From Marsupella aquatica (taxonomy: Eukaryota; Plantae; Marchantiophyta), in assembly GCA_973895155.1 (NCBI GenBank), contig OZ316897.1, positions 62,001 through 126,000 of the forward strand: 64,000 nt of DNA, written 5' to 3'. The notes under the pieces are model-generated. The model searched no databases and was not told the DNA's origin. It saw only the letters and a list, made by a program, of their open reading frames with translations. Shown here in pieces: positions 8,201 through 59,948 of this stretch. A program made the position numbers and the translations under genes. Numbering within the stretch: the stretch's first letter is position 1; each line of letters begins with the position of its first letter.

Positions 8201-9137
8201 CGGAAGCTCTTCACCAACAGCTCAGTCGCACCGACAAATCAAGTGCGAAACCTCTAAGTTGGCCTACATTGAAGTACCTAGGACTTCTGATTGCTGGTCT
8301 CATAGCTCGCAAGGTGCACTGTCAAATTCCCATAACGCCACGTTCGACTGGCTCAGCTTCGCTGTCAAGAACGATGGGCTTAGCCTTCTTAAGGTTGATC
8401 CACTTACGGTGACAATTCTCCGAGGAGAGCTCCTGGTCAAACTCTTGAGTGTCGTCCACCTTGAAGGAACCGGAGCTAACTCCTTTCCAGCTTCCTTTCT
8501 TCAACTGCGCATGGCCAGCCTGCTCTACTTTCAGCTTTCCAGATGCTACTGCGCGTCAGGGAGAGCACTATGGGTTGTGGGTTGGGCAAAGCCTTCCCTC
8601 AAATCCACAATAGTTTTGAATCCCTTTCCACCAGCCGGCTTAGCCCTGCCTCACTGATGTCCCCACCTCGCCAGAAAGCCACATTTTCATCCTTGTAAAG
8701 GGATCGTGCACTTTTGGAAGACCGAAGCCTGACGGGTGCAAGATTGGGGATATCAGCGGAACTAGGGATTCCCCGGAAAACCAGCATCCAGGCAAGGCAT
8801 TCTTCAGTTTCAGCATCCTTTCCTGAGCTTCCAATCCTTGCTGAGAATCAAAGGGCAAGAGGGATTCCAGAGCCCACTCTAGTGTTTGATGCTATGGAAT
8901 GACATCTAATTTTAGGGTCCCTAAACCCTAGTGACATCTATTTGTAGGAAAGAAGTCTTCATTGTTTACAAACTTGATTCATGCTTGTTTCATAGCAGTC
9001 CTTGTATTAATTAAAACATCAATGTGCTCTTAGTTAAGAAAACTACTATTGGGGAATAAATGACCTTGCCATGAGGGTACTCTATTTGGATGGCAGTTTT
9101 TACTGCAAAAGTGAGGAGGTCTGGCTGGGATGGGACA

Positions 9138-9380
9138 TCATTGGGTTTGCGCATTCTTAAGCCATGAATTGCTGACTATTTTGTTCAAGATGACTCCAAA
9201 ATTCAATGAATCCAGTATATACTAGATGGACTAGGTCTATGCAACTAGGATGGGAGACCTTTTAATATTCATTGGGTTTGCACATTCTTAAGCTATGAAT
9301 TGCTGACTAGTTTGTTCAAGATGACTCCAAAATTCAATGAATCTAGTATATACTAGATGGACTAGGTCTATGCAACTAGG
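9138..9380. repeat. Tandem duplication, ~131-bp unit
   Basis: CATTGGGTTTGC...GACTAGGTCTATGCAACTAGG at ~9138-9249 and ~9270-9380. Confidence 0.9.
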
Positions 9381-9874
9381 TTAGGTTTTCTCTTCTGACC
9401 ATGTTGTCATTATTATAACAAAAATTAACAATCTTTATTTAGTCCAATTTTAACTCACAAATTTCCAACCATACTTTAATAACCTATAATTAATTTTTAT
9501 AGATAATTTTTGGTTACATGCATGAATGATCTTAGTGTACACATGATATATGACATTGAAATCAACAATTTATTATGTAACCCTAAGGATTATCATTGCA
9601 ATGACAATAATTCTTTTGAATCCTTTGTATTTTATCTCATTCGTATCCTTGTTTGAAATGGTGTTGCAGAGTTCTTTTGGCTCTTCATGTCAACATAGAA
9701 TCAAGGTGTAGGGTGAGCAATTGTAGTAGTGGATCAGATCTCTCGTGGGCTCACGAACCTGAAGGTAGGGCTGGTGTCCATCCTATACACAGTGACACTT
9801 CCAATTCATTCCAATTACAACAAATATCTTTCCAGCATGTCAACTAAATTGCAATGTCTTATTGATTTGTAGGC

Positions 9875-10555
9875 ATGGCACGTAACAAGCAGAAGGCCAA
9901 GAAGCCTAAGACGGAGGTGAGCAACACACAGGTGTCTTGCACAGATTGTGAGAATTTCTCCAAGAGTCAAGTGTACCAGAAGGCAGCTCATTGTTGTGCC
10001 ATTTGTGATGATGGTGGGGGCTTGGTTATCTGTGATGGCCCATGCACGAGACATTTCCACCTAAACCCTGAGTCTAACCTTGCTGTAGAGAACAATTGTC
10101 CAGGGGTGGGGCTCCCCTCTGCACACAAGGGAGCCTGGATGTGCACTGATTGTGTAGAGAAGCAAGCTAAGTGTGCACAGTGTGGAAAGTTGGGGTCTTA
10201 TGAGACCTTTGCTGATGCCGGACTAGTTGTTAGGAAATGCCCTGACAGATTTTGCATAAGATTTTATTGTTTGTCATGTTTGCCTACTCATGCCACAGTC
10301 TGCCCACTTCATACATGCAAGGCATGTGGTGAGCATGATGATGAGTATTGGACAGACATAGTCCATTGTGTTAGATGTCCCACAATGTGGCATTTTCATT
10401 GTTTGAAGGACCTTCAAGCAGAAGGCTATGCTTGTGACAGAGAAATCTATGATCACTCTGCACATGGCGTTGATCGATGGATCTTTTATTGTCATCGCCA
10501 TCCGATTGATCCTACTTTGCATACTCCTGTCAGAGATCACATATCTTGGCTTTGA
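9875..10555 (+). CDS. Stand-alone EDM2-type composite PHD-finger protein (226 aa), intact
   Basis: CAICDDGG..ICDGPCTRHFH...WMCTDC..KQAKCAQCGKLGS...KC...C.RFYC..C...CPLHTCKAC...HCVRCPTMWH..CL...FYCHRHPID..L.TPVRDHI follows the EDM2 PHD region including the TPVRDH end. Basic NLS-like N-terminus. AG acceptor-like site just before the ATG. Confidence 0.85.
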   Translation: MARNKQKAKKPKTEVSNTQVSCTDCENFSKSQVYQKAAHCCAICDDGGGLVICDGPCTRHFHLNPESNLAVENNCPGVGLPSAHKGAWMCTDCVEKQAKCAQCGKLGSYETFADAGLVVRKCPDRFCIRFYCLSCLPTHATVCPLHTCKACGEHDDEYWTDIVHCVRCPTMWHFHCLKDLQAEGYACDREIYDHSAHGVDRWIFYCHRHPIDPTLHTPVRDHISWL

Positions 10556-10956
10556 AGCTGAACGAAGTGGGTTGGTACAGTGCCCCTAATGTGGATGTAT
10601 TGTTTGGAGATTACAGAGAGTTCATTTTTGATGAGAAGGGCCATTGAAATATTAGGCAGCAGTTATCTTGTGCTTACATGTGGCTAGGTACATGCCACTA
10701 AAAACTTACCTTAAGCCTTCCATGATCTCTTCAGACTGAGCAATCATTTTGAAAATTAATAAAATTATAAACTTATTGTTATGTGTCTATGAAGTATAAG
10801 GCTTTTTTAACGGATGACAAATTCTTCGTTTGTATAAATTCTTGATTCTGATTCAATGGGTAGTCCTTCATTTATAACATACTTCATATGTATTATCACA
10901 AAACAATACTCAAGACACTATCTCCTTTTTGTATTCTGTGCAGTATCATTCATATC

Positions 10957-11070
10957 AACATTTGTACAATATTGAAGCCAGACCCAAGAAAAGAAGTGAC
11001 AACTGCTTTCGACAACATTTGTACAATATTGAAGCCAGACCCAAGAAAAGAAGTGACAACTGCTTTCGAC
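10957..11070. repeat. 57-bp perfect tandem duplication upstream of the TET/JBP-like gene
   Basis: AACATTTGTACAATATTGAAGCCAGACCCAAGAAAAGAAGTGACAACTGCTTTCGAC x2. Confidence 0.9.
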
Positions 11071-11089
11071 AAATCAGTACTTTGGGAAG

Positions 11090-11268
11090 GTGAGTACCTA
11101 AACATCAAATTTATTTCTTTCTGTCCTCCTAAATCTTAAATGGTTCATAAATCCAATGATAAAAGTTACAACTTACGGCATTTTGGTACTCAGATCTTAA
11201 ATGGTTCGTGTACTATTTGACCGGAATTGTAATTTTTACTAAATAAATTATTTGTTCTTACATGGCAG
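11090..11268 (+). other. Predicted 5'-UTR spliceosomal intron of the TET/JBP-like gene
   Basis: Donor AAG|GTGAGT at 11089/11090; T-rich tract and GCAG|ATG acceptor abutting the start codon. The upstream exon has an in-frame stop, so it is likely UTR. Confidence 0.6.
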
Positions 11269-12633
11269 ATGGGAAAAAGAAAGCATAATACTTTAAGAAA
11301 AAAAGAATTGGGGGAAGATTTTTCTGTGGATGTATTTGCTACAGTGTGGGAAGACCTCAAAAAATTAGATACCGTAAAATTGAAGTTTGCACTTCATTGG
11401 ATTCTATGTCATGACAACATTCTTGAACTTTTTGTTAAAAAAGTTCTTAGCCTAGAGTCTTCAAGATTTTCAAGAACACTATTCTTGAATGGGTATCAAA
11501 ATTGTAGAAGCCATATCATTCAGATCTTTCCTCCTGAGGTGTTCATTGAAATTGATGATATCTTTTTTCATCATGGTTTCAGACTAAAATTACCTCAACC
11601 TTTGAAAAAATCAATTACTATGTTTTCTAATCTTGACATTAGAAAGCTTAAACTTTTTCAAAAAGAAAGAGATAATCTTTGTAGAAATGGAGGAACTTAT
11701 GCTAAAGTTGAAGTAGACGTTCAACGTATTTCCTCTTCAAAACTAAAAACACTTACTGGTGTAATTTTAGGTGATTGGGATCAAACTACAACAACATTTA
11801 CCTCTGATCCAAACTTTATTTTCTTAAAATTTCCATCAGACCTCATTATCGTAGAAGAAAAGAAAGGATTTACCTATCTTTTTGATAGGTCTGGAGTCAA
11901 ACCATATTTGATAGCAATGATATTCCATCAAGATATCCTATCACCTGATTCAATGGTCTTCATTCGAAGATTATTAGAACAATTACATGCTGCCCATCAT
12001 GTTATCCAAAGAGGGAAAGGAAAAAGATCATGGGAAAGTAAGATGACAGGGTTTGGTCCTTTTCATAATCCTTACAAAAAAGATCAAAGTTGTGTATCTT
12101 TTTATACTCATGAACAAAAGATAAAGACATTCTTCAATCAAGATTGTCCCGATGCAGCCAATTTTGAAGACATGGTAGATAAATATTCTCATCGAGAGTT
12201 AATCGACATTATTCTTGGACTCTACATGTGGTTATGTCCACAAATGTTAGACAGCTTTTTAGATTATTCTCATCCTTACTTATGTTCAAATGATTATAAG
12301 ATGAACATATTTGAGAAAGCACTAAAATGTAAAGGTCCTAGTGCTTATCAATTATATATTAGTAAAGATTATTGTGTAGAAACTCATGCTGATCATGATA
12401 CAGCAGAATTTACTTTATGTTATGTTAGTCATCCTGATACCAAGATTTCTCCTGGAAACTTTGTTATTCCAGAGTATGGAATATTATTACCTATTAGAGA
12501 TGGTAATTTATTTTCATTTCGTAGTGACATTATCCATGGTACAGGATATAGAATTCCAACATCAAATTCTATATATGTAGGAGCTATTACCATAAACAAA
12601 AAATTAGATAGACTTTTACAAAGAAAACATTAA
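11269..12633 (+). CDS. TET/JBP-like 2-oxoglutarate/Fe(II) dioxygenase (454 aa), intact
   Basis: HxD (ETHADHD, His at 12385), GNFVIPEYGILLPIRDGNLFSFRSDIIHGT with distal His at 12535, upstream RG...KMTGFG motif. This spacing is typical of TET/JBP DSBH domains. The canonical C-terminal 2OG-binding Arg is not obvious. ORF is markedly AT-rich. Confidence 0.75.
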   Translation: MGKRKHNTLRKKELGEDFSVDVFATVWEDLKKLDTVKLKFALHWILCHDNILELFVKKVLSLESSRFSRTLFLNGYQNCRSHIIQIFPPEVFIEIDDIFFHHGFRLKLPQPLKKSITMFSNLDIRKLKLFQKERDNLCRNGGTYAKVEVDVQRISSSKLKTLTGVILGDWDQTTTTFTSDPNFIFLKFPSDLIIVEEKKGFTYLFDRSGVKPYLIAMIFHQDILSPDSMVFIRRLLEQLHAAHHVIQRGKGKRSWESKMTGFGPFHNPYKKDQSCVSFYTHEQKIKTFFNQDCPDAANFEDMVDKYSHRELIDIILGLYMWLCPQMLDSFLDYSHPYLCSNDYKMNIFEKALKCKGPSAYQLYISKDYCVETHADHDTAEFTLCYVSHPDTKISPGNFVIPEYGILLPIRDGNLFSFRSDIIHGTGYRIPTSNSIYVGAITINKKLDRLLQRKH

Positions 12634-14788: not shown

Positions 14789-14864
14789 TAGCCCTCCACT
14801 GAAATTTTGCCGTGTCCACACAAGACAACCACACTTTGATTAAAGACCAGTGCTAGATTCTTCA

Positions 14865-15233
14865 TCAAAAATCTTCTGGCTTGGGAATCCAAGTGGTACT
14901 CAAGACCATTGATGGAATATGGTTGTCATTGGGGTTCACAACATAAAAATCAAGGTCATAAAATTCTTCTCCAATTTGTAATGGCACTTGTTTTACTCTT
15001 CCCCAAAGTGAAATTAATCGTCCATCGATTGAGATTTGAGCACATATGGGCTGAACGTGTTGGAGAACTAATTGATGAAACAGTTTGTGGGACAGTAAAT
15101 TTATTCCAGAGCCTGGGTCAATAACAAAGTGCTGAATAGTGTGTCCTTCCAATTTAATCTCCCCTTCAAGAGAATACTGAAATGCGCAGGAGAGAAAATC
15201 ACAGCAATCCATAGTAGCTTTTACGGTCCACAT
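14865..15233 (-). CDS. Retropepsin-like aspartic protease domain
   Basis: FVIDPGSGINLLS active-site-like motif, GRVKQVPLQIG...LDFYVV...MVLSTTW (variant of xILGxxW). Confidence 0.65.
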   Translation of the reverse strand: MWTVKATMDCCDFLSCAFQYSLEGEIKLEGHTIQHFVIDPGSGINLLSHKLFHQLVLQHVQPICAQISIDGRLISLWGRVKQVPLQIGEEFYDLDFYVVNPNDNHIPSMVLSTTWIPKPEDF

Positions 15234-15342
15234 GATGACTCAAACAGAATAAGTGCTCCTCAGTGCTTCAATCAGGTCCATTCATACTCCAGGGAATAAA
15301 CGCCCCTTCAAATCTTATATACATGAAGACGTTGCAAATCTG

Positions 15343-17820
15343 CTATCTACTCAACAACCCTTGAGTAACAACGTCCGGCCACGAAGGAGGAGTAGGTAAC
15401 CTTACTAGTCTCCTAAGTGACTTATACCCTTGAGCAGAAGAGTTCATAGCCTTATTCCGTATCAACTGTTCTCGTAGCTTAACAAGCTCTTTCTCGTACT
15501 TATGCGGAACAGCATACCCTTCATGGCAGACCCAAACAGAGTATTGGTATGGCCAAGGAAACTCTGGAGTTATTGGCGGAAAAGGAGCTTCAGCACGTCG
15601 GAGGACATATACCCAACACCAAATTTCATATTCCAAACATTTATATCTTCTACCCTTATCAATGGGAGGAATAGCCTTACCCGGCTTATAAGTGGGAATC
15701 AACATTCGAATACTCGGTAGATACGTACCAGGTAAAATCTGTTGTTGTTGATGTATACTCTCCATTTCCAGATGTCGGAAAGCTATCCGAAAATCATTCT
15801 TCTCCCACTTATGAATTGAAGCAAGGTTAGGTATAGGAATTAGGGATGGTAGTACCACTGTGTGCCCAAGTTTGGGAGGTACTCTGATAATACGAGGATC
15901 TTCGTCTTCCTCTCCATCGCTTGGAGCTCCTTTCCAACGAAAAATAATGTCTGGGTTTGAAGAAGGTATCACCGACTCCTTAGTAGGCCAACGTGATAGT
16001 ACAACAGGAGATGAAGATGCAGGAGGTGGAGAAGAATTCCCCATTGTCGTGTTGATGGGCTTCAGCTGCTCAAAATCTGGTGAATTTGCTTCATGAAAGA
16101 TCTGTTGATTTCTTACACGACGCAACCTTTTCCCAGGTCTTCGAGTATATGTCACTTGAAATTGCTCCGTAATAAGTGAACTCTCATCTCCAAGTGATAT
16201 CCGAGTACCCTTATCTCTGCTTGAATCCAGTAAGATAGAAGCTGATGCAGAGCTAAATGCCAAATCAGGTGTTCCAGACAGAGGTATGGGTGGAGATACA
16301 CTCTTGGTCTCAGGTAGCCCTAAATTGCTTGAAGGTCCAAGAGATGGAGTGGTCTGTAGACTGTGTTGAGACTCAAGTAATCTCTCTTCTGGAAGGTAAG
16401 CTGGAGAAACCCAATCAACAGATGGGTGTGGAGGAGGCCCTTTTCTCGCCAATGCTTCTGCTAACTCCTCAGACATAATCAGAGCAACTGTTATCCTGGT
16501 TTCGGGGGTCGGCCACATAGGAAATGGCATGACAAAATTAGGTGAAGTTGGTTGTCCAGCTACTCCTTCTACATCTACTATTTCGTCCTCTGAATCAGCC
16601 TTAAACAACTTTACAAGCTCCGGGCATAGTACCGCCAGAGGTTCCATTGATTGTTGTACAAGAGGAACCACATCTAGGTTTGGGGAGGGACTACGAGAAT
16701 CTTCCGAATTATACTCCTGTAAAGCTTTTAAAGCATTATTACTCACTTCCATGGGTGGTGAAGCAGGGTTCTGTGAAGTTTTATCATACCCATCCGCTGC
16801 AGTAGTATATTGTTGAGGAGGTTCTCCTGGTAAGCTTTCTTCATCCACATCCATCCTGTCTTCGTCATTCGCTCTGAAAGCAAAATTGTCCTGATCAAGA
16901 TCTTGATCCTCTGATGGGTGGGAAAGAATTGGCTCGTCTCTCCCGCCAACTGGTTCTCTTGTCTCTTTCAGTCTCCGAACTTCATTTACCAGCTCAGATT
17001 CTTCGCAAGTGAGTAGTTCGCATAACGCCACCAGTGTTGAATTGGATCGGACTTCTCGTACTTCCGGCAACTCATTTGCTTCACAGGTAGATGCGCTCCA
17101 ATGGGTACGATAGAAGACTTTCTCTGAAAGGAGCAGACATTTATGCTTGTGATAAATGTGAGCTAGATAGGGAGTCAAGTTGGTAAATCTCAACTTTCCA
17201 GCTTGCAACCTGCTATGAAAGTTCTTTACCTGGGTATGAATTACCCTATATAAGATCTTCGTCCAATTGATGGTCTGCTTCTGTTCTAATGAAGAGATAA
17301 CGGTGGCAGCGAAAGAAAGAGTAATACGTGTCTGACTCTCTGGATAGAAAATTGGTGATAGAAATCGAAAAAGATGCTGCAAAGAGGTAACTAAACAGTC
17401 CGTGGTTACCCAACCATTTCGCCTCTTAAAGGATTCAGGAGCAAAGAAAGACTCTATATAAGCTCGGGGCTCTCCATCAATCCTCTCCAAATCCTCGCCC
17501 GTTGTCGGCGTCGAGTAGACTCCCGCTATGAGCGCTTCAGTCCAAACACTTGGACGCGAGCGGACACCGATTCCTTCCTCAGCGTCCCACACACCTTGGT
17601 CGATGAGGCTGAACTCACACATCCTCCAAGGGAAACGAAGTAATTTCTTCAAGCCCATCAATGCAAGATTCGTCCTCAATTGTCGGCGGTCCACCATATT
17701 CGACGGGATAATTGCGAGTATTGGTCGCGTCGTAAGTTTGGACTCCACCATCGTGTCAATCATAAAGGACGCTTCTCTTGCCGTTCCTAGAAGTGGACGC
17801 TTCTTGCAGCGTCCCGTCAA
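15343..17820 (-). CDS. Gypsy extra ORF (825 aa): PMD/Transposase_32-like N-terminus plus long Pro/Ser-rich region
   Basis: Intact long ORF downstream of pol. GLKKLLRFPW...WTEALIAGVYSTP..G...NGW...C...LFRFLSPIFYP...INWTKIL...LTPYLAHIY pattern. Confidence 0.65.
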   Translation of the reverse strand: MTGRCKKRPLLGTAREASFMIDTMVESKLTTRPILAIIPSNMVDRRQLRTNLALMGLKKLLRFPWRMCEFSLIDQGVWDAEEGIGVRSRPSVWTEALIAGVYSTPTTGEDLERIDGEPRAYIESFFAPESFKRRNGWVTTDCLVTSLQHLFRFLSPIFYPESQTRITLSFAATVISSLEQKQTINWTKILYRVIHTQVKNFHSRLQAGKLRFTNLTPYLAHIYHKHKCLLLSEKVFYRTHWSASTCEANELPEVREVRSNSTLVALCELLTCEESELVNEVRRLKETREPVGGRDEPILSHPSEDQDLDQDNFAFRANDEDRMDVDEESLPGEPPQQYTTAADGYDKTSQNPASPPMEVSNNALKALQEYNSEDSRSPSPNLDVVPLVQQSMEPLAVLCPELVKLFKADSEDEIVDVEGVAGQPTSPNFVMPFPMWPTPETRITVALIMSEELAEALARKGPPPHPSVDWVSPAYLPEERLLESQHSLQTTPSLGPSSNLGLPETKSVSPPIPLSGTPDLAFSSASASILLDSSRDKGTRISLGDESSLITEQFQVTYTRRPGKRLRRVRNQQIFHEANSPDFEQLKPINTTMGNSSPPPASSSPVVLSRWPTKESVIPSSNPDIIFRWKGAPSDGEEDEDPRIIRVPPKLGHTVVLPSLIPIPNLASIHKWEKNDFRIAFRHLEMESIHQQQQILPGTYLPSIRMLIPTYKPGKAIPPIDKGRRYKCLEYEIWCWVYVLRRAEAPFPPITPEFPWPYQYSVWVCHEGYAVPHKYEKELVKLREQLIRNKAMNSSAQGYKSLRRLVRLPTPPSWPDVVTQGLLSR

Positions 17821-17970
17821 GACTAAGTTTTAGGGTGGACGCTTCTCTCAGCATCCAGTGCAAAAACTAAAATTCTGAACACTTGTGAAAGGGGAGGGAA
17901 TGCTGATTCTAATAAAGTACAAACTACCTACCGCCCTCCACTGAAACTATGACCTGTCCCAGGTGAAACA

Positions 17971-19283
17971 CTAAATAGGAGACTCATGATATCGCTTAAC
18001 CCAGAATCCATTGATTCGGGTGTCAAGTGGGTGACCGTCTAAGGTAGTCAAGGAAACCGAACCGTTAGCCCAGATTTGGGCAACTCAATAAGGACCAATC
18101 CAATGGGTATGGAGTTTCCCAGGAAATAACATATAACAGGAATCAAAGACTAATGCTAAATCACCAACATCTAAATTCACGACTCGCAGCTTTTGATCAT
18201 AAACAAGCTTACGCTTGTTCTGAATTGTAGCTGTATGGTCTAACGCTAAAAGTCTAACTTCTTCTAATTTGACAATATCATAAAACCTATGTGGGAGACT
18301 AGCCGCTGGAGAGAGACGGTTGGATACCAAGAGTCGTTCTGTCGGGAAGGAGAATTCAATAGGAATAATACTGTCTAGGCCATAAGTCGGGTAGAAGGGA
18401 GTGTGAAGGGTTGTAATTTTCTCGGTAGTACGGTAAGCCCATAATGCAGAATGTAACTTCACATCCCAGTCTGTCTTGTGAGACTCTACTATCTTATTCA
18501 GGATCTTGCCCACAATGCCATTAGCTCTTTCCGTTAAGCCATTAGCTCTGGGTTTGTAAGGAGTAGTTTTGCGATGCTTGATAAGATATGTGTTAGTAAT
18601 TAACTCAATAGTTGAGTTAAGAAAATGCAAACCCCTATCGCTTACCAACTCCAAAGGACACCCGAACCGAGTAATAATGTGCTCAAAGAGAAATGCAGCC
18701 GTTGTTGTAGCATCATTCTTGCGAGTGGCTTTAGCCTCCACCCATTTGGTGGCATAATCAGTGGCCAAAATAATGTATTTACTTCGGCTTTTTCGAGCTG
18801 TTGGTGAAATTGGGCCAATAAAATCAATACCCCATTTCTCAAATGGTGTCAAAGGCAGGATGGGCGTAAGAGGCCATTTGGAACTAGCAGTGGGTTTCCC
18901 TATTCTTTGACAGGGGTCACACGTCTTAATAAAGTTGTAAGTATCTCTATGCATGGTAGGCCACCAGTACCCATCATCCAAAATTATCTTTACAGTAGTA
19001 TTGACAGCACAATGGCCACGTGTTTCACCAGAATGTAAAGCTTCAATTACTTGTGGGAGTTCCCTGTTCTCCAGACATCGTCGCATCTTCTGATCAGGAC
19101 CTTGTTTAAACAAAGTGCCCTGAAGGATAGTATAAGGTCCCACCTTATGTGCAAAAACAGCTCGTTCTTCCGCATTAAGGCCTTCAGGAAAACTACCATG
19201 AATCAACATGTGCACAATATCAAAATACCGTGAAGACTCTCCTTCAATGTGCCACAAATGCTCATCTGGGAATTCATCAGAAA
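17971..19283 (-). pseudogene. Gypsy pol C-terminus: integrase (HHCC, D,D35E, GPY/F) with one in-frame stop at 18085
   Basis: H(SGETRG)H...GYWWPTM...CDPCQ, WGIDFIGP, VSDRG, NGLTERAN, KLHTHWIGPY*; frame continues to TAG at 17971. Confidence 0.95.
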
Positions 19284-19919
19284 GATTATGCTGATTCTCT
19301 GGCCTGGGTAAGATGCACGGGCATTGGGCAAGGTGAATCTTGTCAGAAGTTCACATTTGTTAGACTAGAACCATTGGGATGCACAAGCTTTGAGGTCTCC
19401 TAAGCAATCACCAGTGCCTTTGATTTTGTCCCTAAACTAAGCAAAGTTCTCTTGTAGCATGTTAAGGGGAGCCCTCTACCTCTAAACCATGAGATCCTAA
19501 ACTAACTTCACTTGAGACATCTCTAGGTACGTAAATAAACAAACACTCATCAGGGAGGTCCAATTCTCAATTTCAGAGATAGTAGACATAGAAGTAGGCC
19601 CTATGGAGATAGATGAAATCAATAGAACTGAGAAACTAGTGGGGAGCAGGAAAACTACTCATACACAAATAGTCGCTTCCAAGTTGAAATTCCAAGTTTT
19701 AGAATAGAAAGAAAAGTGACTCTTCTATGGTAATAATGGATAGAAACCAAACAGAGATAAATAATAAGAAAAAAAACAACTAATGCAAAGATAAATTGAA
19801 TTTAGGGTGAAATGAATACAATGGGCATCATCATATATACGGGCATATATATCTCACAGCTTTGTTCATTAGAATCCCCTGGGAACTCCACATGTAGAGA
19901 TTTTGACTTTGATTCTTAT

Positions 19920-22900: not shown

Positions 22901-23657
22901 CTTCCTCCTGGTTTGCCTCCTCTCGCTCCTCTGAATCGCTATCCTGCAAGGAGATTATTGTGACCGCGGTTGTGATCCTATCGGCAGTGAGGGCGTGGTC
23001 CATCACTACGCTTAATACATATGCACAAATTGACGGAAACAATGGTAGCCCCTTCCTGGTTATAACACTTGCAAGGTTGCGCTTCCATATCAGCAATGGG
23101 TGAAGAGTTCCATCTAATACTCTCTTGGCAACTGATAGTTGCTCTGGCGTTACATAATGGTACCCACTCTTGAGGATTACCCATTTAGTAAAGAACTCCA
23201 CATACTTGCGGACCTCTTGGTTTGTCATAACGCCATATTGGACCTTCTTCTCATGCTGGAGCTCTCCTCCTTGTTTTAGGAAGGCACTCATCTCTCTTCC
23301 CGTAAGTGCCTCAATTGGATAGTCAGCTGGTAGGCTGTCTGGGGCGAAAATCCCAAACAAAGTCGCTAATTCCTTGTTGGGGATGCGGTAGGCTTGTGCT
23401 CTGTATGTGATAAACACTCCAGTATCTGCAAAATTGACATCCACAATATCTTTGTAAAGCTGACAAGCACGATCAATTGATACAAACCTATCAATTCGGA
23501 CAAGCCCATAGCATCGAGCCCTTTCAAATATCTCTCTGTATTCTTCAATGAAAGCCACCTCAGAGATTGAGTTCCTCAATCTTTCTTCTGGAGTTGATCG
23601 AGGTTGTTTATTTTTGGCTGGAGGGACCTCTACTCGGGTTTGATTTGGAGATGTCAT
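19920..23657 (-). pseudogene. ~1245-codon ORF split by one TAG (21789): PMD/Transposase_32-like domain, acidic/basic linker, coiled coil, then ~620-aa unknown globular region
   Basis: ORFs 21789-23657 and 19920-21782 are in the same frame, separated only by the stop plus two codons (GEIA*RELVQC). No introns apparent. Confidence 0.7.
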
Positions 23658-30820: not shown

Positions 30821-30982
30821 CGTTGTCCCTTCTTCCCACTAGTAGGCATGTACACCAAACCTCTGGTGGCACACTATCTTGGTTTGATATCAGTTTGATA
30901 TGTAGACAAATGTCATGCTAGACTGTGGTGACAATGAGAATGGTCGTGCTCCCCAGGTTCTTACAATAGTCTACGAGCTCAT

Positions 30983-48700: not shown

Positions 48701-51131
48701 TCATTTCATTGTTGGAGGTTGAACCAAGTAATGGACGTCCATGAGCTTGCCTCTTTGGTTCCGCGATGAACGGTGTAACTGGTTCAGCGTTCGACACTTG
48801 CTTTCTCTTCAAATTCCTCACTGTACATTCCAACTCTTCAACCTTTGCAAGAGCTATGTGCAATTGGTCATCCTTGAATTTTAATTCTACTTTCTGAGTC
48901 AAAATTATTTGTTGCAAGTCTACATTCTCGCCCAATCTACAATGCACCTGTTCAAGCTCTGCCATTGTACGCTCTAAGTCCAATTTCAAAGACTCCACGT
49001 TAGTGCACTGAGTATTGCGTTTGGCAGTGCACTTTGCTACCTCATTTCTCAGTTCCCCCATGCACATTTCGTTCTCCTTCAAAGCTTTGTGAGCAATTGC
49101 GTATTCCGCCTTCAGCCTTGTCTGTTCTACAAGTGCTCGTTGAAGGTCTTCCAACTTGCTCTGTGACTCTAATCTGAACAACTGAAGTTGTGTGCTCACA
49201 TCATCTCGTTGTTTAGTGCACCCTGCAAGTTCACTTTCCAATTCTTCCATGCGCATTTGGATATCCTTCAAAGCACATTCAGCACCTAAACATGATTCCA
49301 TGCGCACTGCCTGCTCTACAACCTTCCGTTGAACATCTTCAAACGTGCAGTCTAACGACAATTTCAACAACTCAAGTTCATTGATCGCGGCATCTCATCC
49401 TGCAACACACCTTTCAAGGTCAGCACTCAATTCTGCCATGCGCGATTGGTCCTCCTTCCAACCTTGTTCAACAGCTTGGTAATTGTCATTGCGCTTTGTC
49501 ACCTGCACAAGCTTTTCTTCAAGGGCTTTCAACTTCCATTGTGACTGCAATTTGAACTCTTCAAATTCGCTGGTGACCGCATCTCGTTCTGCAGTGCCCA
49601 TTTGAAGTTCAGCACTCAATTCTGCCATGCGTGATTGGTCCTCCTTCCAACCTTGTTCAACAGCTTGGTATTCGTCATTGCGCTTTGTCACCTGCACAAG
49701 CTTTTCTTCAAGGTCTTTCAACTTGCATTGTGACTGCAATTTGAACTCTTCAAATTTGCTGGCGATAGCATCTCGTCCTACAGTGCCCATTTGAAGTTCA
49801 ACACTCAATTCTGCCATGTGCGATTGGTCCTTCTTCCAACCTTGTTCAGCAGCTTGGTATTCATCATTGCGCATTGTCACCTGCATAAGCTTTTCTTCAA
49901 GGTCTTTCAACCTGGACTGTGACTGCAATTTGAACTCTTCAAATTCGCTAGTGACCGCATCTCGTTCCGCAGTGCCCATTTGAAGTTCAGCACTCAATTC
50001 TGTCATGCGCGATTGGTCCTCCTTCCAACCTTGTTCAGCAGCTTGGTATTCGTCATTGCGCATTGTCACCTGCACAAGCTTTTCTTCAAGGTCTTTCAAC
50101 CTGCATTGTGACTGCAATTTGAACACCTCAAATTCTCTGGTGATTGCATCTCGTCCTGCATTGCACATTTCTTGTTCAACACTCAAATTTGCCATGCACG
50201 ATTGGTTCTCATTCCAACCTTCTCCAGCATCTTCATATTCGTCATTTCGCATTGTCTGTGCCGTCAACTCCCCTTCAAGGTCATCAATCCTGCCTTCTAA
50301 CTTTGATTCCGATGACTGAAGTTTACATTGAATAGGTTGAGGTTGGGTTTCCCTTCTTGTAGTACCCTCGTTGCCAACATTTGGCCCCGATATAAGGCTT
50401 TCCCATGAAAATCCCCAATGTAGCAGCAACTGTGTAATAGCAGTCCCACAATAAGCGGGGAACGCCTTTGACTCACGAACATTCCTCATACCCTGAAGGT
50501 GTTTCTTGAATTTACTTATTTCCAAAGCCAATTCATCGTAAACTAAATCACTCCAATCTGGTAGCAATTTTGGCACAGGGCCTGCTAGTCTTTTTCCCTT
50601 CGGCAAAGTACCACATAAATACCAGTAGAAATAACTCAATTGTTTCGCTGATAACTGTGAAGGCTTCTCCTTACCCAGCAGAATTTCCTGCACCACTCTA
50701 ATTGCCCCAGACCATCTATCATACGGAGCTCTCAAAAGCTTTAAACTATAGGGATTCCCTCTTATTCGTGGACGAACAAACAAATCATTGAATTCAGGAC
50801 AGTGCATTCTCTGCCTATACTTGGCAAATGTACCAGATGGCAGCTTGAATGCCGCACGTAACACATCTTGTGTGATTTTCAATGAACATCCTCGGAATTC
50901 ACTGGATTTTGATGCATAATCAAATCCCAACACAAACTCCTTCACCCCACATACGGCTGTTATGTTGTAATCAATCCCAAAAGTTTGTTGCAGACCAAGG
51001 TTGAAAATCATTGACGATCGAGTTGGATCACCTCCCACCAAACTACGAATTCGTTCCGGTGTGCAGGAATGCCACAACGTTCCAGTGCCGCCTGTTTCAA
51101 TTCCAACCCACGGATTGTCAAAATGTTCCAC
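45775..51131 (-). pseudogene. Multi-exon fusion: PMD-like domain + repeated coiled coil + SNF2-RING-helicase of the Ris1/FRG (CHR27/CHR28-like) group; nonsense codons at 49395 and 48459, frameshift ~47900
   Basis: EASPPDGLM..V...HQRKGLFWM..RE....CFGGILADDQ|GMGKT, TLIVCP.SV..QW..EI, YDVIITTY, WYRVILDECQ.I.N, RWCVSGTP, LRMRRHCGH, degenerate RING (CNKC|..DDPMISICGH...C...CGAPHC), KTIVFSQWT, LLSLK...GLNITAANHV..D.WWNPTAEDQAVDRTHRLGQTK. GT-AG introns at e.g. 48168 and 46229. Confidence 0.85.
49400..50260 (-). repeat. Coding tandem repeat, 180 bp (60 aa) x ~4.5, coiled coil
   Basis: RNDEYQAAEQGWKEDQSRMAELSAELQMGTAERDAVTSEFEEFKLQSQ..LKDLEEKLVQVT repeated. Confidence 0.95.
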
Positions 51132-51674: not shown

Positions 51675-52848
51675 ATTACCCGAGCACACTATGGCTGTGC
51701 GTTATAGAATACCCCATCCCTCGTACCCCCAACCTTCAAAATACTGTAATTTGAATATACATACATACCCTTCGGTGCACATTGACATTGTTTTGCATTA
51801 CCCCAGAACATGGTGGCTGTGGGTTTTGGAAAACCCCATCCCTCGTACCCCCCAACCTTTAAAATACTGTAATTTGATAATACATGTACCCTTTGGAACA
51901 CATTGGCACTTGCATTACCTCATGGTGGTTGTGCGTTTTGGAATACCCCATCCCTCGTACCTCAACCTTCAAAATACTGTAATTTGATACATACATACCC
52001 TTCAAAGCACATTGGCACTTGCATTACCCGAGCACTTGGTGACTATGCGTTTTGGAATACCCCATCCCTCGTACCCCCCAACCTTCAAAATACTGTAATT
52101 TGATATATACATACCCTTCGGAACACATTGGCACTTGCATTACCCCAGCACATGGTGGCTGTGCGTTTTGGAATACCCCATCCCTCGTACCCCCCAACCT
52201 TCAATACTGTAATTTGATACATACGTACCCTTCGGTGCACATTTACATTTGCATTACCCCAGCACATGGTGGCTGTGCATTTTGGAATACCCCATCCCTC
52301 ATACCCCTCAACCTTCAAAATACTGTAATCTGATATATACATACCCTTTGGAGCACATTGGCACTTGCATTACCCCAACACATGGTGGCTGTGAGTTTTG
52401 GAATACCCCATCCGTCGTACCCCCCAACCTTCAAAATACTGTAATTTGATATATAGATACCCTTTGGAGCACATTGGCACTTGCACTACCCCAGCACATG
52501 GTGGCTGTGCATTTTGGAATACCCCATCCGTCGTACCACCCAACCTTCAAAATACTGTAATTTGAAACATACATACCCATCCGAGCACATGGACATTTGC
52601 ATTACCCCAGCACATGGTGGCTGTGCATTTTGGAATACCCCATCCCTCATACCCCTCAACCTTCAAAATACTGTAATTTGATATATACATACCCTTCGGA
52701 GCACATTGGCACTTGTATTACCCCAGCACATGGTGGCTGTGAGTTTTGGAATACCCCATCCCTCGTACCCCCCAACCTTCAAAATATTGTAATTTGATAC
52801 AAACATACCCTTTGGAGCACATTGACATTTGCATTACCCCAGCACATA
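51675..52848. repeat. Satellite array, ~116-bp unit x ~10
   Basis: GCATTACCCCAGCACATGGTGGCTGTG..TTTTGGAATACCCCATCCCTCGTACCCCCCAACCTTCAAAATACTGTAATTTGAT repeated. Confidence 0.95.
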
Positions 52849-53164
52849 ATTATATACAAGCCATCCGGATAGTGCACTTGTGATGCCCGTTGAACTCAAA
52901 TTGCCATCGGAAGCTATATATATGGACAGATTGCTTGACAGAATTCCACAATTACTTGTTATACTGTATAGTTGATATATTCTTGTGTTCATTTTTCCTG
53001 TCCATTTGGAAATTGCACAAATTAACAAAAGTATCCATAAAGGTCTGTCATCGTAGAAAGTGATGACATCAAGTCAATTTTGAGCACTCCCTCGGAGGTG
53101 TAATTGTTTAGCATTTGTAAATACCTCGCACTATATATCACGACTGTACACATTGAATTAGTTC

Positions 53165-54790
53165 TACTCAGCCATTTCCCACGTCCAAATTTGAATGGTG
53201 ACACTTTTGATACTAACGGAGTTTAAAGGTTTCAACATGAATGCTATTGCTGCAAAAATGTTTAACCGGAAATGTTATGGGAGTTTACGGTTTAACCGGA
53301 AATGTTATGGGAGCCTACGAGCAACGAGCACATTAAGGAACCAGATTGAAGACGGGCAATAGGAATTCTAGAAGCCCAATACTTCCCGACCATAATACCA
53401 TCCCAACCATGGTGCAGAAGGGAATTTGAAGGCGGCAAGCACATTAAGGAACCAAATTGAAGGCGGACAGGAATTCTAGAAGGCCAATGCTTCCCAACTA
53501 TAATACCAGCCCAACCATGGCGTTGAAGGGAATTTGAAGAAAGTGATGACGTCAAGTCAATTTTAAGCACTCCCTCGGAGGTGTAATTGTTCAGCATTTG
53601 TAAATACCTCGCACTATATATCACGACTGTACACATTGAATTAGTTCTAATCAGCCATTTCCCACATCCAAATTTGAATGGTAACACTTTTGATACTAAC
53701 GTAGTTTAAAGGTTTTGACATGAATGCTATTGCTGCAAAAATGTTTAACCGGAAATGTTATGGGAGTCGACTACGGTTTAACCAGAAATGTTATGGGAGC
53801 TAATCAGCCATTTCCCACGTCCAAAATTGAATGGTGACAGTGCTTTTGATACTAACGGAGATTAAAGGTTTTGACATGAATGCTATTGCTGCAAAAATGT
53901 TTAACCGGATATGTTATGGGAGTCGACTACGGTTTAACCAGAAATATTATGGGAGCTAATCAGCCATTTCCCATGTCCAAAATTGAATGGTGACACTTTT
54001 GATACTAACGGAGATTAAAGGTTTTGACATGAATGCTATTGCTGCAAAAATGTTTAACTGGAAATGTTATGGGAGTCGACTACAGTTTAACCGGAAATGT
54101 TATGGGAGCTAATCAGCCATTTCCCACATCCAAAATTGAATGGTGACACTTTTGATACTAACATAGTTTAAAGGTTTCGACATGAATGCTATTGCTGCAA
54201 AAATGTTTAACTGGAAATGTTATGGGAGTCGACTACGGTTTAATCGGAAATGTTATGGGAGCTAATCAGCCATTTCCCACGTCCAAATTGAATGGTGACA
54301 CTTTTGATACTAACGGAGATTAAAGGTTTCGACATGAATGCTATTGCTGCAAAAATGTTTAACTGGAAATGTTATGGGAGTCGACTACGGTTTAACCGGA
54401 AATGTTATGGGAGCTAATCAGCCATTTCCCACGTCCAAAATTGAATGGTGACACTTTTGATACTAACGGAGATTAAAGGTTTCAACATGAATGCTATTGC
54501 TGCAAAAATGTTTAACCGGAAATGTTATGGGAGTCTACGGTTTAACCGGAAAATTATGTTATGGGAGCCTACGAGCGACGAGCACATTAAAGAACCAGAT
54601 TGCAGACGGGCAATAGGAATTCTAGAAGACCAAATGAATACTTCCCGACCATAATACCAGCCCAACCATGGCACAGAAGGGAATTTGAAGGTGAAGAGCA
54701 CATTAAGGAACCAGATTGAAGGTGGGCGGCAGGAATTCTAGAAAGCCAATCTTTTCCGACTAAAATACCACCCCAACCATAGTGCAGAAG
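53165..54790. repeat. Satellite array, ~155-bp unit, interleaved with a second ~118-bp unit
   Basis: CAGCCATTTCCCAC.TCCAAA.TTGAATGGTGACACTTTTGATACTAAC...ATGAATGCTATTGCTGCAAAAATGTTTAACCGGAAATGTTATGGGAG repeated about 7 times; GAAGGGAATTTGAAGG...GGAATTCTAGAAG unit at ~53320-53540 and ~54570-54790. Confidence 0.9.
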
Positions 54791-57260
54791 GGAAGGGTCT
54801 GTCGGCAATTTGAATTACTTGTTCCCAAGCTGCTGCCAAGTGCAAGCAAGCGTGGACGTGGGTTCCCACTTTAGTTAGACAAACCATATCGAAGAAATTC
54901 ATTGAACGTGGGACGAACGAAAGTATTGTGCTTGCAAAAAGAATAGAGACAGTTTGTGTCTATCCCAACTTCATATTCTCGTTGCCATTGGCAACAGAGA
55001 AGAAGATTTAATTGCACAATGAATTGGTAATACAGAGTGTACAATGGTTTTGGTGGGGACAGTTGCCAACTCAATAACTTTGAGCTTTTAACTATGTTAT
55101 TACCTAATTATCGCTGAAAGTGCTCAGACAATAAATGTTCACCTATTGCCGTAAAGTATAAACATTGTGCACGTTCAGTTCCGCTACTTGAATTTACTAA
55201 ATCAAATTGGCAAGTGTTGGATTACACATCACTTCCCAAGTTAAAGCAACTTAAATTAGCTGGAGTGAGGGTCGCCACCTATTGGAATTTGGAAATGGAG
55301 TGCTTCTTGTGCACCACCATCAGCTTTGCCTCGGCTGACTTTTGGTGTAGTCCTCCCATCAAGCGTGCGCAGCCCCTGAGACACGAATTGCAGCTCATGA
55401 GCTTCAAACGCTCTACAAGCATTACAAGCATTTGTGTGGCAATTCTAATGGTTGTCGTGAGCAATTGAAGGATAGACTTATACTGTAGATAATAATGCCG
55501 GCAGCCCCATCCCAATTTCCTCATTCCAATCAGTAGTGTGCTCTGGTTTATTCCACAGCTCTTGTGGGGCCTGATAGAAACTTCCAACCATGGTAACTCA
55601 AATGAGCAAGAAGCAGAAGAGGTATTCATCAATTTGACTAACCGGTGTTGCGACAACGCTTGCTTGAAAGGACTCAAACAATTCCAATGCCAATTTTCAA
55701 GTGGCTCGCTCAGCCACTCACTGCGAAGTTGCGCAGCTACCTTCGGTTCTGCTATTGCATGAAGACACGGAATTGGCCAAAAAATTTGCAAACAGTTATG
55801 TGAAGGAGAAACGATGCAGGTGGGGCAAGTCAATGGCCCGGGCCAAACTCAAAGCATCGATTCAGAGCTTGAAAGCGAACAAAATGGCAGCTAACTAAAA
55901 AGTTTTGCTGTGGTGGGTGTGTTGACCTCGCCACACAACAACTCACGGGACAGCAGGGTGAAACAAGTTATAAAAAGTTAAGTTCCAAGATTTTTGGCAC
56001 TTAACTTTCCAGTGAAGTACTCGCAAAATGACGGACACTAACTAGAGATCGTTAGTGATTTTAACTATCAGATTTAACTATGAGTGCGAGTTGAGCCGGC
56101 AGGAACCCTGCGCCTGTTTTCTTTTGATTTAACAGGATTATTTAGTTGAAAAGATAACCCACCCTAAGAAAATTAACTAGGCGCAGGGAGGTTCTGGACA
56201 GCCCAAATGTCTATTTTTACTTAGAATCTCATGTTGAGCGAGTATTTAACCAAAAAGTTAAGTGCAAACACACATGGAACTTATCTTTTTTCACCCTCGC
56301 ACTCACATAAATGTTTGTCGTGGTAGAAGAGCAGAGAGCCAGAGCCACGCACTCTTTCAGTCCCACTTTGTCTTGGCTTGGGTTTGTTACTTACTATGCT
56401 CCATGTTGACAACATTCCCTACTCCTTGTTCCTCCTCGGACCCAATGACATCAGACTTTTAACATGACGGGTTTTTCAGTTAGAACTGGGGATAGGAGAA
56501 AAATTTGTCTTTAATCAATGCAAATGATCAGAACAGCCACACATTCAAGCACATAATTATATACAAGCCATCTGGATAGTGCACTTGTGATGCTCGTTGA
56601 ACTCAAACTGCCATCGGAAGCTATGGACAAAATGCTTGATAGAATTACACAATCACTTGTTATACATAGTTGATATATTCCTGAATTCATTTTTCCTATC
56701 CACTTGGAAATTGCACAGATTAATAGAAGTATCCATGAAGGTCTGTCATCGTAGAAAGAGATTTCCAGCAAAAACTTGTAAGAAAATTGCAAGACGTGAG
56801 GTGCTCAACAGTTTTTTGTGTCTTGGCCAGTCTTGGGAGGCCATAGGCATTCGTCTATTTGCAGGACGTTTGTTAGCTTTTTTGGGTTTGCATAGATTAC
56901 GGTATGGTGGCTACAGAGAGCAAATTGCCCGCCATCGCTCACGGATATGAAGGAAATGCTAAGTCGAGCTGCAATTCCAACCAGAAGAGAGAAGAGACAG
57001 GTACAAAGGAAGATAGCAGGAGAGCTAGAACTATAATGCGACAGAAGTGGCAGTAAGTTAATTTGAAGGCTGCTTTCACGCTCTGTCAAAAAATATGAAA
57101 AAGTTTTGTCTCGGTATGGCCAGCGCCCACTCGCAGTGGAAGTCTAAACTGACCTCATTGAAATCTACAAATGTGATCCACCGCCGTGCAACAGAGGCCA
57201 CCTCCCGTGGACCTGTCCACTTGAAGAATCTTAACCCACCTAGTATTCCCACGGCCGACA

Positions 57261-58158
57261 ATGAGGAAATCTTCTGCATCCCCCATGGAGATTCTACAAC
57301 TGGGTAGCCAACGGATTTTTAGGAATAAGGTGGTACTAGGCTTTGAATCGGAATTCAATTCCTGGCAGGCTAGAGATTGGCTGTCAGCTTTCAACCAGGA
57401 GAATGAGATTAAGTTGGGACTCCACGACAAACTGCCTAAGTAATGCTCTCTTTGTGGTTCAATTCAACGCCAACTTGGGGGAAGACATCCAACGACAACT
57501 TCTCCAAAGATCTCCTCTCAAGGTACTTGACAAACATGCCGTAGTGAATGACTACAAAGCAAACTTTGACCTGTGTAACCAACCAGACTTCAAGCAGTTG
57601 GAATCTATCTACATCAAATGGGGCGACCCGATGATCTATGAATTTATCAAGTTCATTGAGGCGCCGGTGGGTAAATTTACTCGGGCTAAGCTAGCCTCCG
57701 GTATTGAGCATCATCACATTTCAGCTCTGGTGGAATCCACACTCAAGATTTTCCCAACGGCTTAGTGACTCCGAGGTGTCTACTATCCTCTTCGACTACG
57801 TGGGCAGGAATCTGCGGTCAGTGTTGTTTTTGCTTCTCCTACAGGCACTTACCGGCCGCGTGTTCTGCATCACGGCCCCATTATTTTGACAACCTGGTAA
57901 CACAATTCAACATTCGTGAAGCAGGAACTCGACATCCCACACATCAAAAGGAACGGCCGGATCGCGAGGTCCTACAAGTGTGCCAAGGGGTGGAGTATAA
58001 GGCAAGGCAAAAGGCAGCTTTTTGGCAGGCGTAGGCTGAGGAGCAGCAACAACGGGAGGAAGCTGAATTACAACACCTGGCATTACGGGCCCAAGAGTTT
58101 GAGGCGGATCGGGCATAGACCCGGGTGTGGATTAGCATTGAGTCTAGAGAGTAAATAA
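57261..58158 (+). pseudogene. Decayed LINE (L1-like) ORF1: DUF4283-like region + CCHC zinc knuckle
   Basis: Across frameshifts: NKVVLGF...SWQARDWL...KLP.ALFVVQF...LLQRSPL.V....VNDY..NFD...FDYVGRNL, then CCFCFSYRHLPAAC (CX2CX4HX4C). Confidence 0.55.
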
Positions 58159-59357
58159 TATATCACAACTGTACAGAGTGAATTAGTTCTAATCAGGAAG
58201 CCTGGTCTTCTTTAATTTGTATCTCATTTCCCACGTCCAAAATTGAATGGTGACACATTTTATGCTAACGGAGTTTAAAGGTTTCAACATGAAAGCTATG
58301 GGAGTCTACGGTTTAACCGGAAATGTTATGGGAGCCTCCACTTTAACCAGAAATGTTGTGGGAGTCCATATGCTGAAACTTGGAGACATACCATGCATCG
58401 CATGTGAGACACAGCCTTTACATAAGAGTCTTGTATGGTGGGTTGGACAGTGAAGGCAATTTGGGTCCTAGGAGTGTCTGAATGGAGTTGCAACACAGAT
58501 GGAGGTGAGTAGCAAGGCATGAATACCGCAACCATGGATGTTGTACAGAAGAGAAGCTCCATCACTACACACTCGGCCTGAAACCACGCCACGCCACTGC
58601 CACCAGTAAGCATAAATAATGCAACCATTCGGAAATGCCTTCGCTCGAAGACTGCATCCAACAACGACTCGAATCCATCACTTGCTGCAATTATTGACAA
58701 CGTTAGTACGCCATCCAAGCAACACAAGATTCACGATGCACTGCCACCAGTAAGCATAAAAACCGTAACCATTTGGAAACGCCTTCGCTCAAAGACTGCA
58801 TCCGACAACGACTCTAATCCATCACTTGCTGCAATTATTGACGACGTCAGTACGCCATCCAAGCAACGCAAGATTCAAGATGCAGATTGAAGGGAATTTG
58901 GAGGTGGCGAGCACAATCAAGGACCAGATTGAAGGCCAGCAACAGGAATTCTCGAAGGCCAATGCTTCCCGACCAAAATACCGACCCAACAATAATGCAG
59001 AAGGGAATTTGAAGGTGACGAGCACATTTGAAGGCTGGTACAGGAATTCTAGAAGCATTGACCAAGCTTTGTTTCCTTTGTATTTCTCACGAACCTAATT
59101 GAATGGTGACACTTTTGATGCTAACGGAGTCCAATGGTTTCAACATGAATGTTATAGCTGCAAAAGACTTTTATTGGAAATGTTATGGGAGTGCGGGACT
59201 ACAAGTGAGTCACAATGAATGCTAGTGGTGTATGAACACTTAAAAAATAATGTTATGGGAGCCTACGGCAACCACCCGTAAGTCACCCTAATCAATACTA
59301 GCGGAGTTTAAAGGTTTTAATAATAATGTTGTGGGAGTCCAAATGTTGAAACGTCGA

Positions 59358-59920
59358 GACCGTGCACTGCATGTAGGAGACCATGCACCGCGCTCCCTAA
59401 ATACCCTGAAATGGCCTGAAGACCGGCCTCATTGCACGCGCTGTGCAGAGAAGATATATACAGACCGTGCACTACATGTAGGAGACCATGCACCGCGCTC
59501 CCTAAATACCCTGAAATGGCCTGAAGACCAGCCTCATTGCACGTGTTGTGTAGAGATCGACTTGCTTTGTAATGTTGGTTCCTTTGTATTTTCATGGCAG
59601 GACGGTCTTTTTCGGGCACTCGTGGCAAAAAGACCACGAAAAAGACCGCAAAGACTGGGCATTGCGATCGCTGGGCTGCACAAAAATGTATATATAAAAA
59701 ATACCCTGAAATGGCCTGAAGACCGGTCTCATTGCACGCGCTGTGCAAAGAAGATATGTACAGGCCTTATTGCATGCGCTGTGCATAGAAGATATATACA
59801 GGCCTAAAGACCGGCCTCATTGCACGCGCTGTGTAGAGAAGATATGTACAGGCTCCCTAAATACCTTGAAATGGCCTGAAGACCGGGCTCATTGCACGCA
59901 GAGTGAGAGGAAGATATATA
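59358..59920. repeat. Tandem/subrepeat array of ~100-bp units
   Basis: AATACCCTGAAATGGCCTGAAGACCGGCCTCATTGCACGCGCTGTG..GAGAAGATAT recurs about 5 times. Confidence 0.9.
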
Positions 59921-59921
59921 C

Positions 59922-59948
59922 AGGGTTTAGGGTTTAGGGTTATAACCC
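59922..59948 (+). repeat. Short interstitial plant telomeric tract ending in a palindrome
   Basis: AGGGTTTAGGGTTTAGGGTTATAACCC. Confidence 0.8.

Follow-up and report, generated by a model that had tools for sequence, protein, structure and literature searches.

The published architecture of a TLH protein consists of a C2H2/OrsD segment, a “TLH domain”, and a RecQ helicase, as described in bioRxiv 10.1101/2024.02.27.582403, and the papers searched describe the family from fungi and a choanoflagellate only. A gene with the same three-part architecture as the fungal TLH genes (those of Magnaporthe and Fusarium, S. pombe tlh1/2, and Ustilago UTASa) and that of one choanoflagellate is harbored by a 64-kb stretch of the liverwort Marsupella aquatica (contig OZ316897.1, positions 62,001 to 126,000). 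This whole stretch is referred to as the window, and coordinates are counted from its first nucleotide. A preliminary description, made from the letters of the window, had proposed that the interval 8910-59948 is one Starship-like element of about 50 kb, or a nest of related elements, in which genes of chromatin type surround a tyrosine recombinase (YR)-RecQ gene. The clustering of these genes around the YR-RecQ gene, which is the TLH gene, is real. The interval itself is probably a mosaic in which independent repeat and gene units stand side by side in repeat-rich DNA, not one mobile element. The region would be a plant counterpart of the fungal TLH-bearing chromosome-end repeat regions, in which the helicase gene includes a domain of recombinase fold.

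The window TLH gene resembles the fungal ones in being intron-less, multi-copy, and embedded in repeats, and in its decay, which is frequent among them as well. It differs from them in its land-plant host, in being linked to a gene for an N-terminal domain (N-domain) and a coiled coil, in having TET-like genes beside it, and in that its TLH domain has been modelled with a tyrosine-recombinase fold.

Tyrosine-recombinase catalytic domains are also found in the eukaryotic Crypton and DIRS-Ngaro elements, of which DIRS/Ngaro have terminal or split direct repeats. Compared with these, the recombinase of the window is fused to RecQ and is without a reverse transcriptase, and the direct repeats around it are not element ends but two copies of a dead piece of a gene. 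The Y′ elements of yeast are helicase-encoding chromosome-end repeats that are spread by recombination and occur in partial tandem copies; their helicase does not have the C2H2-YR-RecQ composition. In the window, the TLH gene lies between two copies of a TET-derived repeat, A and A′, and this arrangement of about 1.16 units (A-TLH-A′) resembles that of yeast Y′, of whose partial tandems it would be a putative counterpart.

The Starships of the Pezizomycotina and the window are alike in that a tyrosine-recombinase-type protein is encoded near accessory genes in an island rich in transposable elements (TEs). The defining features of Starships are a captain with DUF3435, located at the 5′ end, flanking direct repeats (sometimes terminal inverted repeats, TIRs), and insertions matched to empty sites (PMC11162782). 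Of these, the window has neither the 5′ captain nor the flanking repeats. In fungi, TET/JBP genes ride various DNA transposons, among them KDZ, hAT, and IS3EU, where they are proposed to counteract silencing (PMC12730594). Both there and in the window, a TET/JBP-type gene family is multiplied alongside mobile or repeated DNA; the TET-like gene of the window, unlike the transposon-borne fungal ones, is without an accompanying transposase gene or termini.

The proposed ends and the genes and repeats between them are as follows, where ORF denotes an open reading frame and AF2 denotes AlphaFold2.

8911-8930, no strand: head-to-head telomere-like motif (TTTAGGG t CCCTAAACCCTA) of 20 bp, the proposed left end; read directly
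9875-10555, plus strand: PHD gene, an ORF of 226 aa that has no introns and encodes three PHD fingers of the NSD type; Pfam matches below cut-off and NSD2 in the PDB
10906-12633, plus strand: TET/JBP-like dioxygenase unit, with about 360 bp of upstream sequence in common with A′ and an intact 454-aa ORF at 11269-12633; alignment edge, motif, and Atlas
26908-30820, minus strand: multi-exon gene with an N-terminal TE-type (“PMD-like”) domain, a coiled coil, and a C-terminal telobox Myb; Atlas and exon reading
32588-33765, plus strand: repeat A, made up of the dead 5′ fragment of a TET unit (about 88 codons and the region upstream of them, start codon deleted), followed by an 18-bp minisatellite and then by a unique tail
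33944-38898, minus strand: TLH-type gene with OrsD/C2H2, a tyrosine-recombinase-fold domain, and RecQ helicase, about 1651 codons, decayed; Pfam, alignments, and AF2
40771-42160, plus strand: repeat A′ (40827-42160) with 56 bp more of TET-upstream homology on its left
45778-51131, minus strand: multi-exon gene with an N-domain, 63-aa (189-bp) coiled-coil repeats, SNF2_N, a RING-like stretch, and Helicase_C; Pfam on exons
59926-59939, plus strand: two telomere units, (TTTAGGG)2, terminating 105-bp repeats, the proposed right end; read directly

About 80 ORFs of the window were listed and scanned with Pfam, the spliced Myb and SNF2 genes being searched exon by exon, and the window was compared with itself at two sensitivities. 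No structural feature was found that marks 8910-59948 as a single element of about 50 kb. At neither sensitivity did the self-comparison reveal a TIR, a long terminal repeat (LTR), or a direct or inverted repeat joining ~8.9 kb and ~59.9 kb, and no structure matching the left-end motif is present at the right end. The telomere-like palindromes that had been taken as boundaries fail in this role, as they are just 2 of 23 telomere heptamers that are scattered over the window (about 8 expected, an over-representation of ~2.7x) and no repeat links the two ends. Moreover, repeats run on past both proposed ends; those of a 135-bp family occur within the interval at 55.9 kb and beyond it at 63.9 kb. 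The 64 kb contain no telomere array; short multi-unit telomere patches occur twice, and one of them caps the 105-bp repeat array. Breaks repaired by telomerase could have left such patches.

The contents of the interval are heterogeneous. Intron-less ORFs, multi-exon genes, a Gypsy remnant, and satellites are mixed, and their ages differ. In the 64 kb, recombinase-type functions are limited to the broken TLH gene and to what remains of a Gypsy integrase; the ORFs scanned by Pfam revealed no transposase domain, and no tRNA gene or Rfam family matched anywhere in the window. The PHD and TET-like genes, which are neighbors on the same strand, are separate units, because homology of the TET unit begins at 10906, 350 bp past the PHD stop codon.

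In the TLH gene, N-terminal C2H2 motifs, the TLH domain, and the RecQ helicase follow one another in that order. Pfam matches were obtained to OrsD (E 8e-9), DEAD (E 4e-16), and Helicase_C (E 4e-14), with ResIII as the only other match and none to DUF3435 in the TLH ORFs. The gene lies in the middle of the interval, ~21-25 kb from either proposed end, and it is broken by a frameshift within 37810-37894 and by an in-frame stop at 34133-34135, which is followed by 63 further homologous codons. A word-indexed homology search with the helicase ORF was dominated by generic RecQ matches. An exhaustive HMMER search showed that the TLH family is wide, with the middle domain conserved in 34 members. 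The closest relative is a protein of the leafy liverwort Calypogeia fissa, at 49% identity, which agrees with a host of the liverwort type.

The middle domain harbors an R…K…RH…H…Y pattern that is invariant in an eight-member alignment, together with a GH(T/S)xxTAxxxY motif. Residues R412, K446, R535-H536, H563, and Y572 of the ORF, all invariant in the same alignment, correspond to the catalytic R-K-(H)xxR-H-Y set. An AF2 model of the window’s own middle domain, built from 34 sequences, has a predicted local distance difference test (pLDDT) value of 80 and a predicted template modelling (pTM) score of 0.72. The top 29 structural matches of this model (VIA) are tyrosine recombinases, topoisomerase IB, and protelomerases. 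The best of them is 4a8e_A, with a Z of 11.8 and a root-mean-square deviation (rmsd) of 2.9 Å, at 172 residues, and Foldseek ranked Cre, XerA, and lambda Int first, weakly (E 0.3). It is on the basis of the structural matches that the name YR-RecQ, given in the preliminary description, is confirmed; the OrsD/C2H2, DEAD, and Helicase_C matches and the conserved catalytic pattern agree with it. As modelled, the TLH middle domain has a tyrosine-recombinase fold, and its activity is a prediction.

The Calypogeia fissa relative (L002:8673-13633, CBCUJL010000074.1) is read as ORFs that abut at 9613/9617, 9916/9920, 12328/12332, and 12931/12935. Since several single in-frame stop codons separate them, this gene is a pseudogene too, though it is annotated as a 1097-aa protein. 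The Calypogeia fissa assembly GCA_965154635.1 contains at least one further gene model of the TLH type, P0024 / CAM6084535.1, located on a scaffold of 46.8 Mb. A telomere motif downstream of TLH in both the window and Calypogeia fissa was considered as a conserved feature and rejected, the orientations being opposite.

TET-derived sequence brackets the TLH gene at 32588-33765 and 40827-42160, just as had been described. The A-TLH-A′ block spans 9.6 kb. The two repeats, 1.2-1.3 kb in size, are offset by 8.24 kb and are 95.5% identical outside the minisatellite, and each is ~73% identical to the live TET gene. Both contain the same TET 5′ part and a common tail and have identical deletions relative to the live gene, including that of the start codon. 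The 18-bp minisatellite (33080-33440, ~20 copies; 41313-41819, ~28 copies) replaces TET coding sequence past about codon 88. No target-site duplication (TSD) is visible around A or A′. Because homology of A′ to the TET upstream region extends leftward past the A/A′ repeat edge by another 56 bp, A′ occupies its native TET context and A is a secondary copy. It is hypothesized that the bracket arose through a local duplication of ~8.2 kb or through templated repair of a TET fragment that was already dead.

Two other origins of the bracket were discarded. As the same dead 5′ fragment is present twice with no TSD, A and A′ do not qualify as the LTRs or termini of an element. Likewise, insertion of TLH into a TET gene does not account for them, since they hold the same 5′ part and not two halves. 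Around the TLH relatives at two other loci, L001 and L002, no flanking repeats were found.

The live TET-like ORF is probably a TET/JBP-like 2-oxoglutarate (2OG)-Fe(II) dioxygenase, an assignment based on its motif and on language-model similarity. Only two homologues are present in a large protein collection, at 34-36% identity, and the HxD (373-375), H423, and R428 are invariant in the three sequences. Among the nearest language-model (Atlas) clusters, 18 of 30 are Tet_JBP or fungal 2OG-FeII_Oxy_6. The ORF has no Pfam match even at E 10, the Tet_JBP profile (PF12851) included, and a profile search of the PDB with the three sequences gave no relative, only a chance match. The AF2 model from the same three-sequence alignment is unusable (pLDDT 33). 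What stands of the label “TET-like” is therefore the HxD…H…R pattern and the Atlas neighbors, and what does not stand is a profile match in Pfam or the PDB. To our knowledge, land plants are generally said to lack TET/JBP-like genes, and here such a gene adjoins a TLH gene.

The PHD ORF matches PHDvar_NSD, PHD-1st_NSD, and PHD_NSD (E 5e-5 to 1e-3, all below the Pfam cut-offs), and in the PDB it matches NSD2 (E 2e-5). The presence of a PHD gene, noticed before, is borne out by these three NSD-type matches together with the one in the PDB.

The telobox Myb was read directly in three exons (27864->26908, minus strand) with the motifs WSKEE, FGPGKWSRIL, and DLKDKWRNL and plausible splice sites, which upholds the earlier assignment. 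In Mybs of the TRF type, the telobox LKDKWRN belongs to the third helix of a single Myb repeat, and this motif is present in the spliced exons, which give only a marginal Pfam match when searched separately (E 0.16). At the boundary of Myb exon 1 and intron 1 (27235, minus strand), there is an apparent GC-AG donor, AG|GCAAGT, and the splice yields the expected AVRRFGPGKW frame. The first exon of the gene (ORF 29231-30820, designated o29231) encodes 529 aa with the N-domain and the coiled coil.

The N-domain of o29231 has Atlas neighbors of the PMD/DUF1985 type, with a score of 0.92. The PMD profile (PF10536) matches none of the four or five candidate ORFs in the window, nor the o29231 homologues at loci L002 and L003, and no similarity among the candidate N-domains was detected by hhalign or BLASTP. 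With a three-sequence N-domain profile, the best non-member is the N-domain of the SNF2 gene, which is not significant (E 0.57). Thus, of the “several PMD-like fusions” reported previously, one ORF retains PMD-type Atlas neighbors, and none has a PMD profile match. The N-domain genes have a common architecture, in which an N-domain and a coiled coil are followed by a variable C-terminal module, without detectable homology.

The SNF2-type gene is one of these. Its exons (48338->45778, minus strand) encode SNF2_N, a cysteine-rich RING-like stretch, and Helicase_C, an order seen exon by exon, and the presence of an SNF2 gene agrees with the earlier reading. RAD5/RAD16-type proteins, with FRG1/2 (CHR27/28) among them, have a RING between the SNF2_N and Helicase_C lobes, of which the RING-like stretch, atypical in its looks, would be a candidate counterpart. 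ORFs upstream of these exons encode the N-domain and the coiled-coil repeats. The coiled-coil units correspond to a 189-bp (63-aa) tandem repeat at 49390-50256, which is in frame and has 4.6 copies at 89% identity. PDB matches of the gene are RAD5 (E 5e-6, generic) and INO80.

The flanks of the TLH relatives and 80 metagenome loci were also inspected. No TET-like, PHD, Myb, or SNF2 homologues were found in either set. Most sequences returned by the metagenome scan with the TLH alignment were RecQ proteins of bacteria and remote relatives of TLH, and neither TET nor N-domain genes were seen next to any of them. The pair of TLH and N-domain genes is the only multi-gene linkage supported across genomes. 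In the window, o29231 is on the strand of the TLH gene and starts 3.1 kb downstream of the TLH end (33944), a distance of 3.3 kb if counted from the premature stop (34133). At locus L003 (ENA ERZ25067493; TLH 34% identical), a homologue of the o29231 N-domain is 2.9 kb downstream on the same strand, and at L002 of Calypogeia fissa, it is 5.6 kb downstream on the opposite strand. The N-domain gene is absent from the 8-kb downstream flank of L093, and the flanks of L001 and L089 (≤3.3 kb) are too short to judge. As a result of its occurrence in the two other genomes, a small linked TLH unit is possible, and the two genes may be linked by either co-duplication or synteny. This linkage across liverwort genomes bears on the spread of chromosome-end gene families.

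How the interval should be read depends on these features taken together. In the mosaic reading, the proposed units are an intron-less PHD gene; a TET/JBP-like dioxygenase gene with a repeat-unit edge of its own; LTR-retroelement remnants and long orphan ORFs; a spliced gene with a TE-type N-domain, a coiled coil, and a telobox Myb; a decayed TLH gene; a spliced N-domain/coiled-coil/SNF2-RING gene; and satellites. These units would have accumulated through separate insertions, segmental duplication, ectopic recombination, and copying between similar regions, as yeast Y′ elements and fungal TLH-bearing chromosome ends do. One point weighs against a mosaic, namely that nearly all long ORFs between 15 and 51 kb lie on one strand; the bias is not significant, because these ORFs form only ~4-5 independent units. 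The alternative on which the preliminary description was centered, a giant Starship-like cargo transposon of ~50 kb that is mobilized by YR-RecQ and has captured silencing-pathway genes as a counter-defense toolkit, is very unlikely. Its attraction is the shared locality of the chromatin-type genes and a tyrosine-recombinase-fold gene, and transposon-borne TET/JBP and other chromatin modifiers have a published precedent in fungi, oomycetes, and plants (PMC12730594). Against it, terminal repeats and TSDs were not found, the choice of end motifs is arbitrary, the recombinase gene lies centrally, is broken, and gives no DUF3435 match, the parts are unequal in age and type, the 5′ edge of the TET unit leaves out the PHD gene, and the cargo set is not seen beside TLH relatives. 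A giant cargo transposon would be a first for a land plant, and the present evidence does not support one. The fallback offered with it, that of a nest of elements, comes near to the arrangement observed. An ordinary host gene cluster, in which the PHD, TET-like, Myb, and SNF2 genes would be chromatin regulators of the host that reside in TE-rich DNA, single-copy and syntenic in relatives, is also very improbable. The spliceosomal introns of the Myb and SNF2 genes, the intact TET and PHD ORFs, and the active-site pattern kept in TET homologues from two other sources would be expected of resident genes, whereas the presence of dead TET fragments within the window marks the TET family as repeated, and the Calypogeia fissa TLH locus (±10 kb) has no synteny for these genes. 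The statement that the interval has no housekeeping gene holds only in that nothing else was recognized; introns of the ordinary spliceosomal kind are present in the Myb and SNF2 genes.

A compact composite element is unlikely as well, if less so than either of these. Here TLH and the downstream N-domain/coiled-coil gene would duplicate or move as a unit of ~8-15 kb, the recombinase domain would break and join DNA, the telobox Myb could steer the unit to telomere repeats, and the TET-like and PHD genes would be neighbors or occasional passengers. Such a unit is consistent with the linkage in three genomes despite TLH identities of only 34-49%, with the predicted recombinase fold and conserved catalytic pattern, and with the C-terminal telobox Myb of the linked gene. 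Yet no termini in common were found, the N-domain gene lies outside the A/A′ repeat block, the strand is opposite in Calypogeia fissa, no Myb was found at L002 or L003, and the N-domain gene is missing downstream of L093 and from the short flanks of L001 and L089; both families may merely occupy one chromosomal compartment. In its strongest form, this alternative becomes a previously undescribed mobile or self-duplicating chromosome-end unit of bryophytes, comprising a TLH protein with C2H2, an active tyrosine recombinase, and RecQ and an N-domain/coiled-coil protein targeted to telomeres by its telobox Myb, with the TET-like and PHD genes as recurrent passengers that blunt silencing. That proposal is more doubtful still, although it is not as improbable as the resident gene cluster. 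A mosaic of independent units thus stays the probable reading of the interval.

The retroelement pieces, orphan ORFs, and satellites assigned to this mosaic are as follows.

14868-15239, minus strand: retropepsin-like fragment; Asp_protease_2 E 1.6e-3, below cut-off
15343-17820, minus strand: 825-aa ORF, largely of low complexity, with no Pfam match
17974-19350, minus strand: Gypsy-type integrase remnant (H2C2, rve, and C-terminal part); Pfam and frame reading
19920-23657, minus strand: two abutting ORFs, of 620 aa (19920-21782) and 622 aa (21789-23657; N-domain, acidic tract, and coiled coil)
51675-59911, no strand: satellite block, with a 116-bp array at 51675-52847 and a 153-bp array at 53647-54552
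56548-59192 and 59357-59911, no strand: rest of the satellite block, dispersed copies and 105-bp repeats, respectively; self-comparison

The Gypsy remnant has no reverse transcriptase or RNase H upstream, and self-comparison revealed no LTR pair around it; it is thus a part of a Ty3/Gypsy element and not a full one. The 620-aa and 622-aa ORFs have no Pfam match, and the intact 620-aa ORF has no homologue in a search of 5.8 billion proteins. Since they abut in different frames, the two may form one gene. TG…CA ends with 5-6-bp TSDs around the pair were considered and rejected, because the 3 matches found compare with ~2.5 expected by chance.

The repeat of ~135 bp at 55935-56290 and 63862-63996 has imperfect inverted arms of 78 nt (55972-56049 and 56213-56290) and may be similar to a miniature inverted-repeat transposable element (MITE). 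Outside the window, at L093:5368-5694 and L094:9488-9814, a small ORF with a Crinkler (PF20147) match is located ~2 kb downstream of a fragmented TLH relative, in sequence of low GC content (37%) that comes from several public samples.

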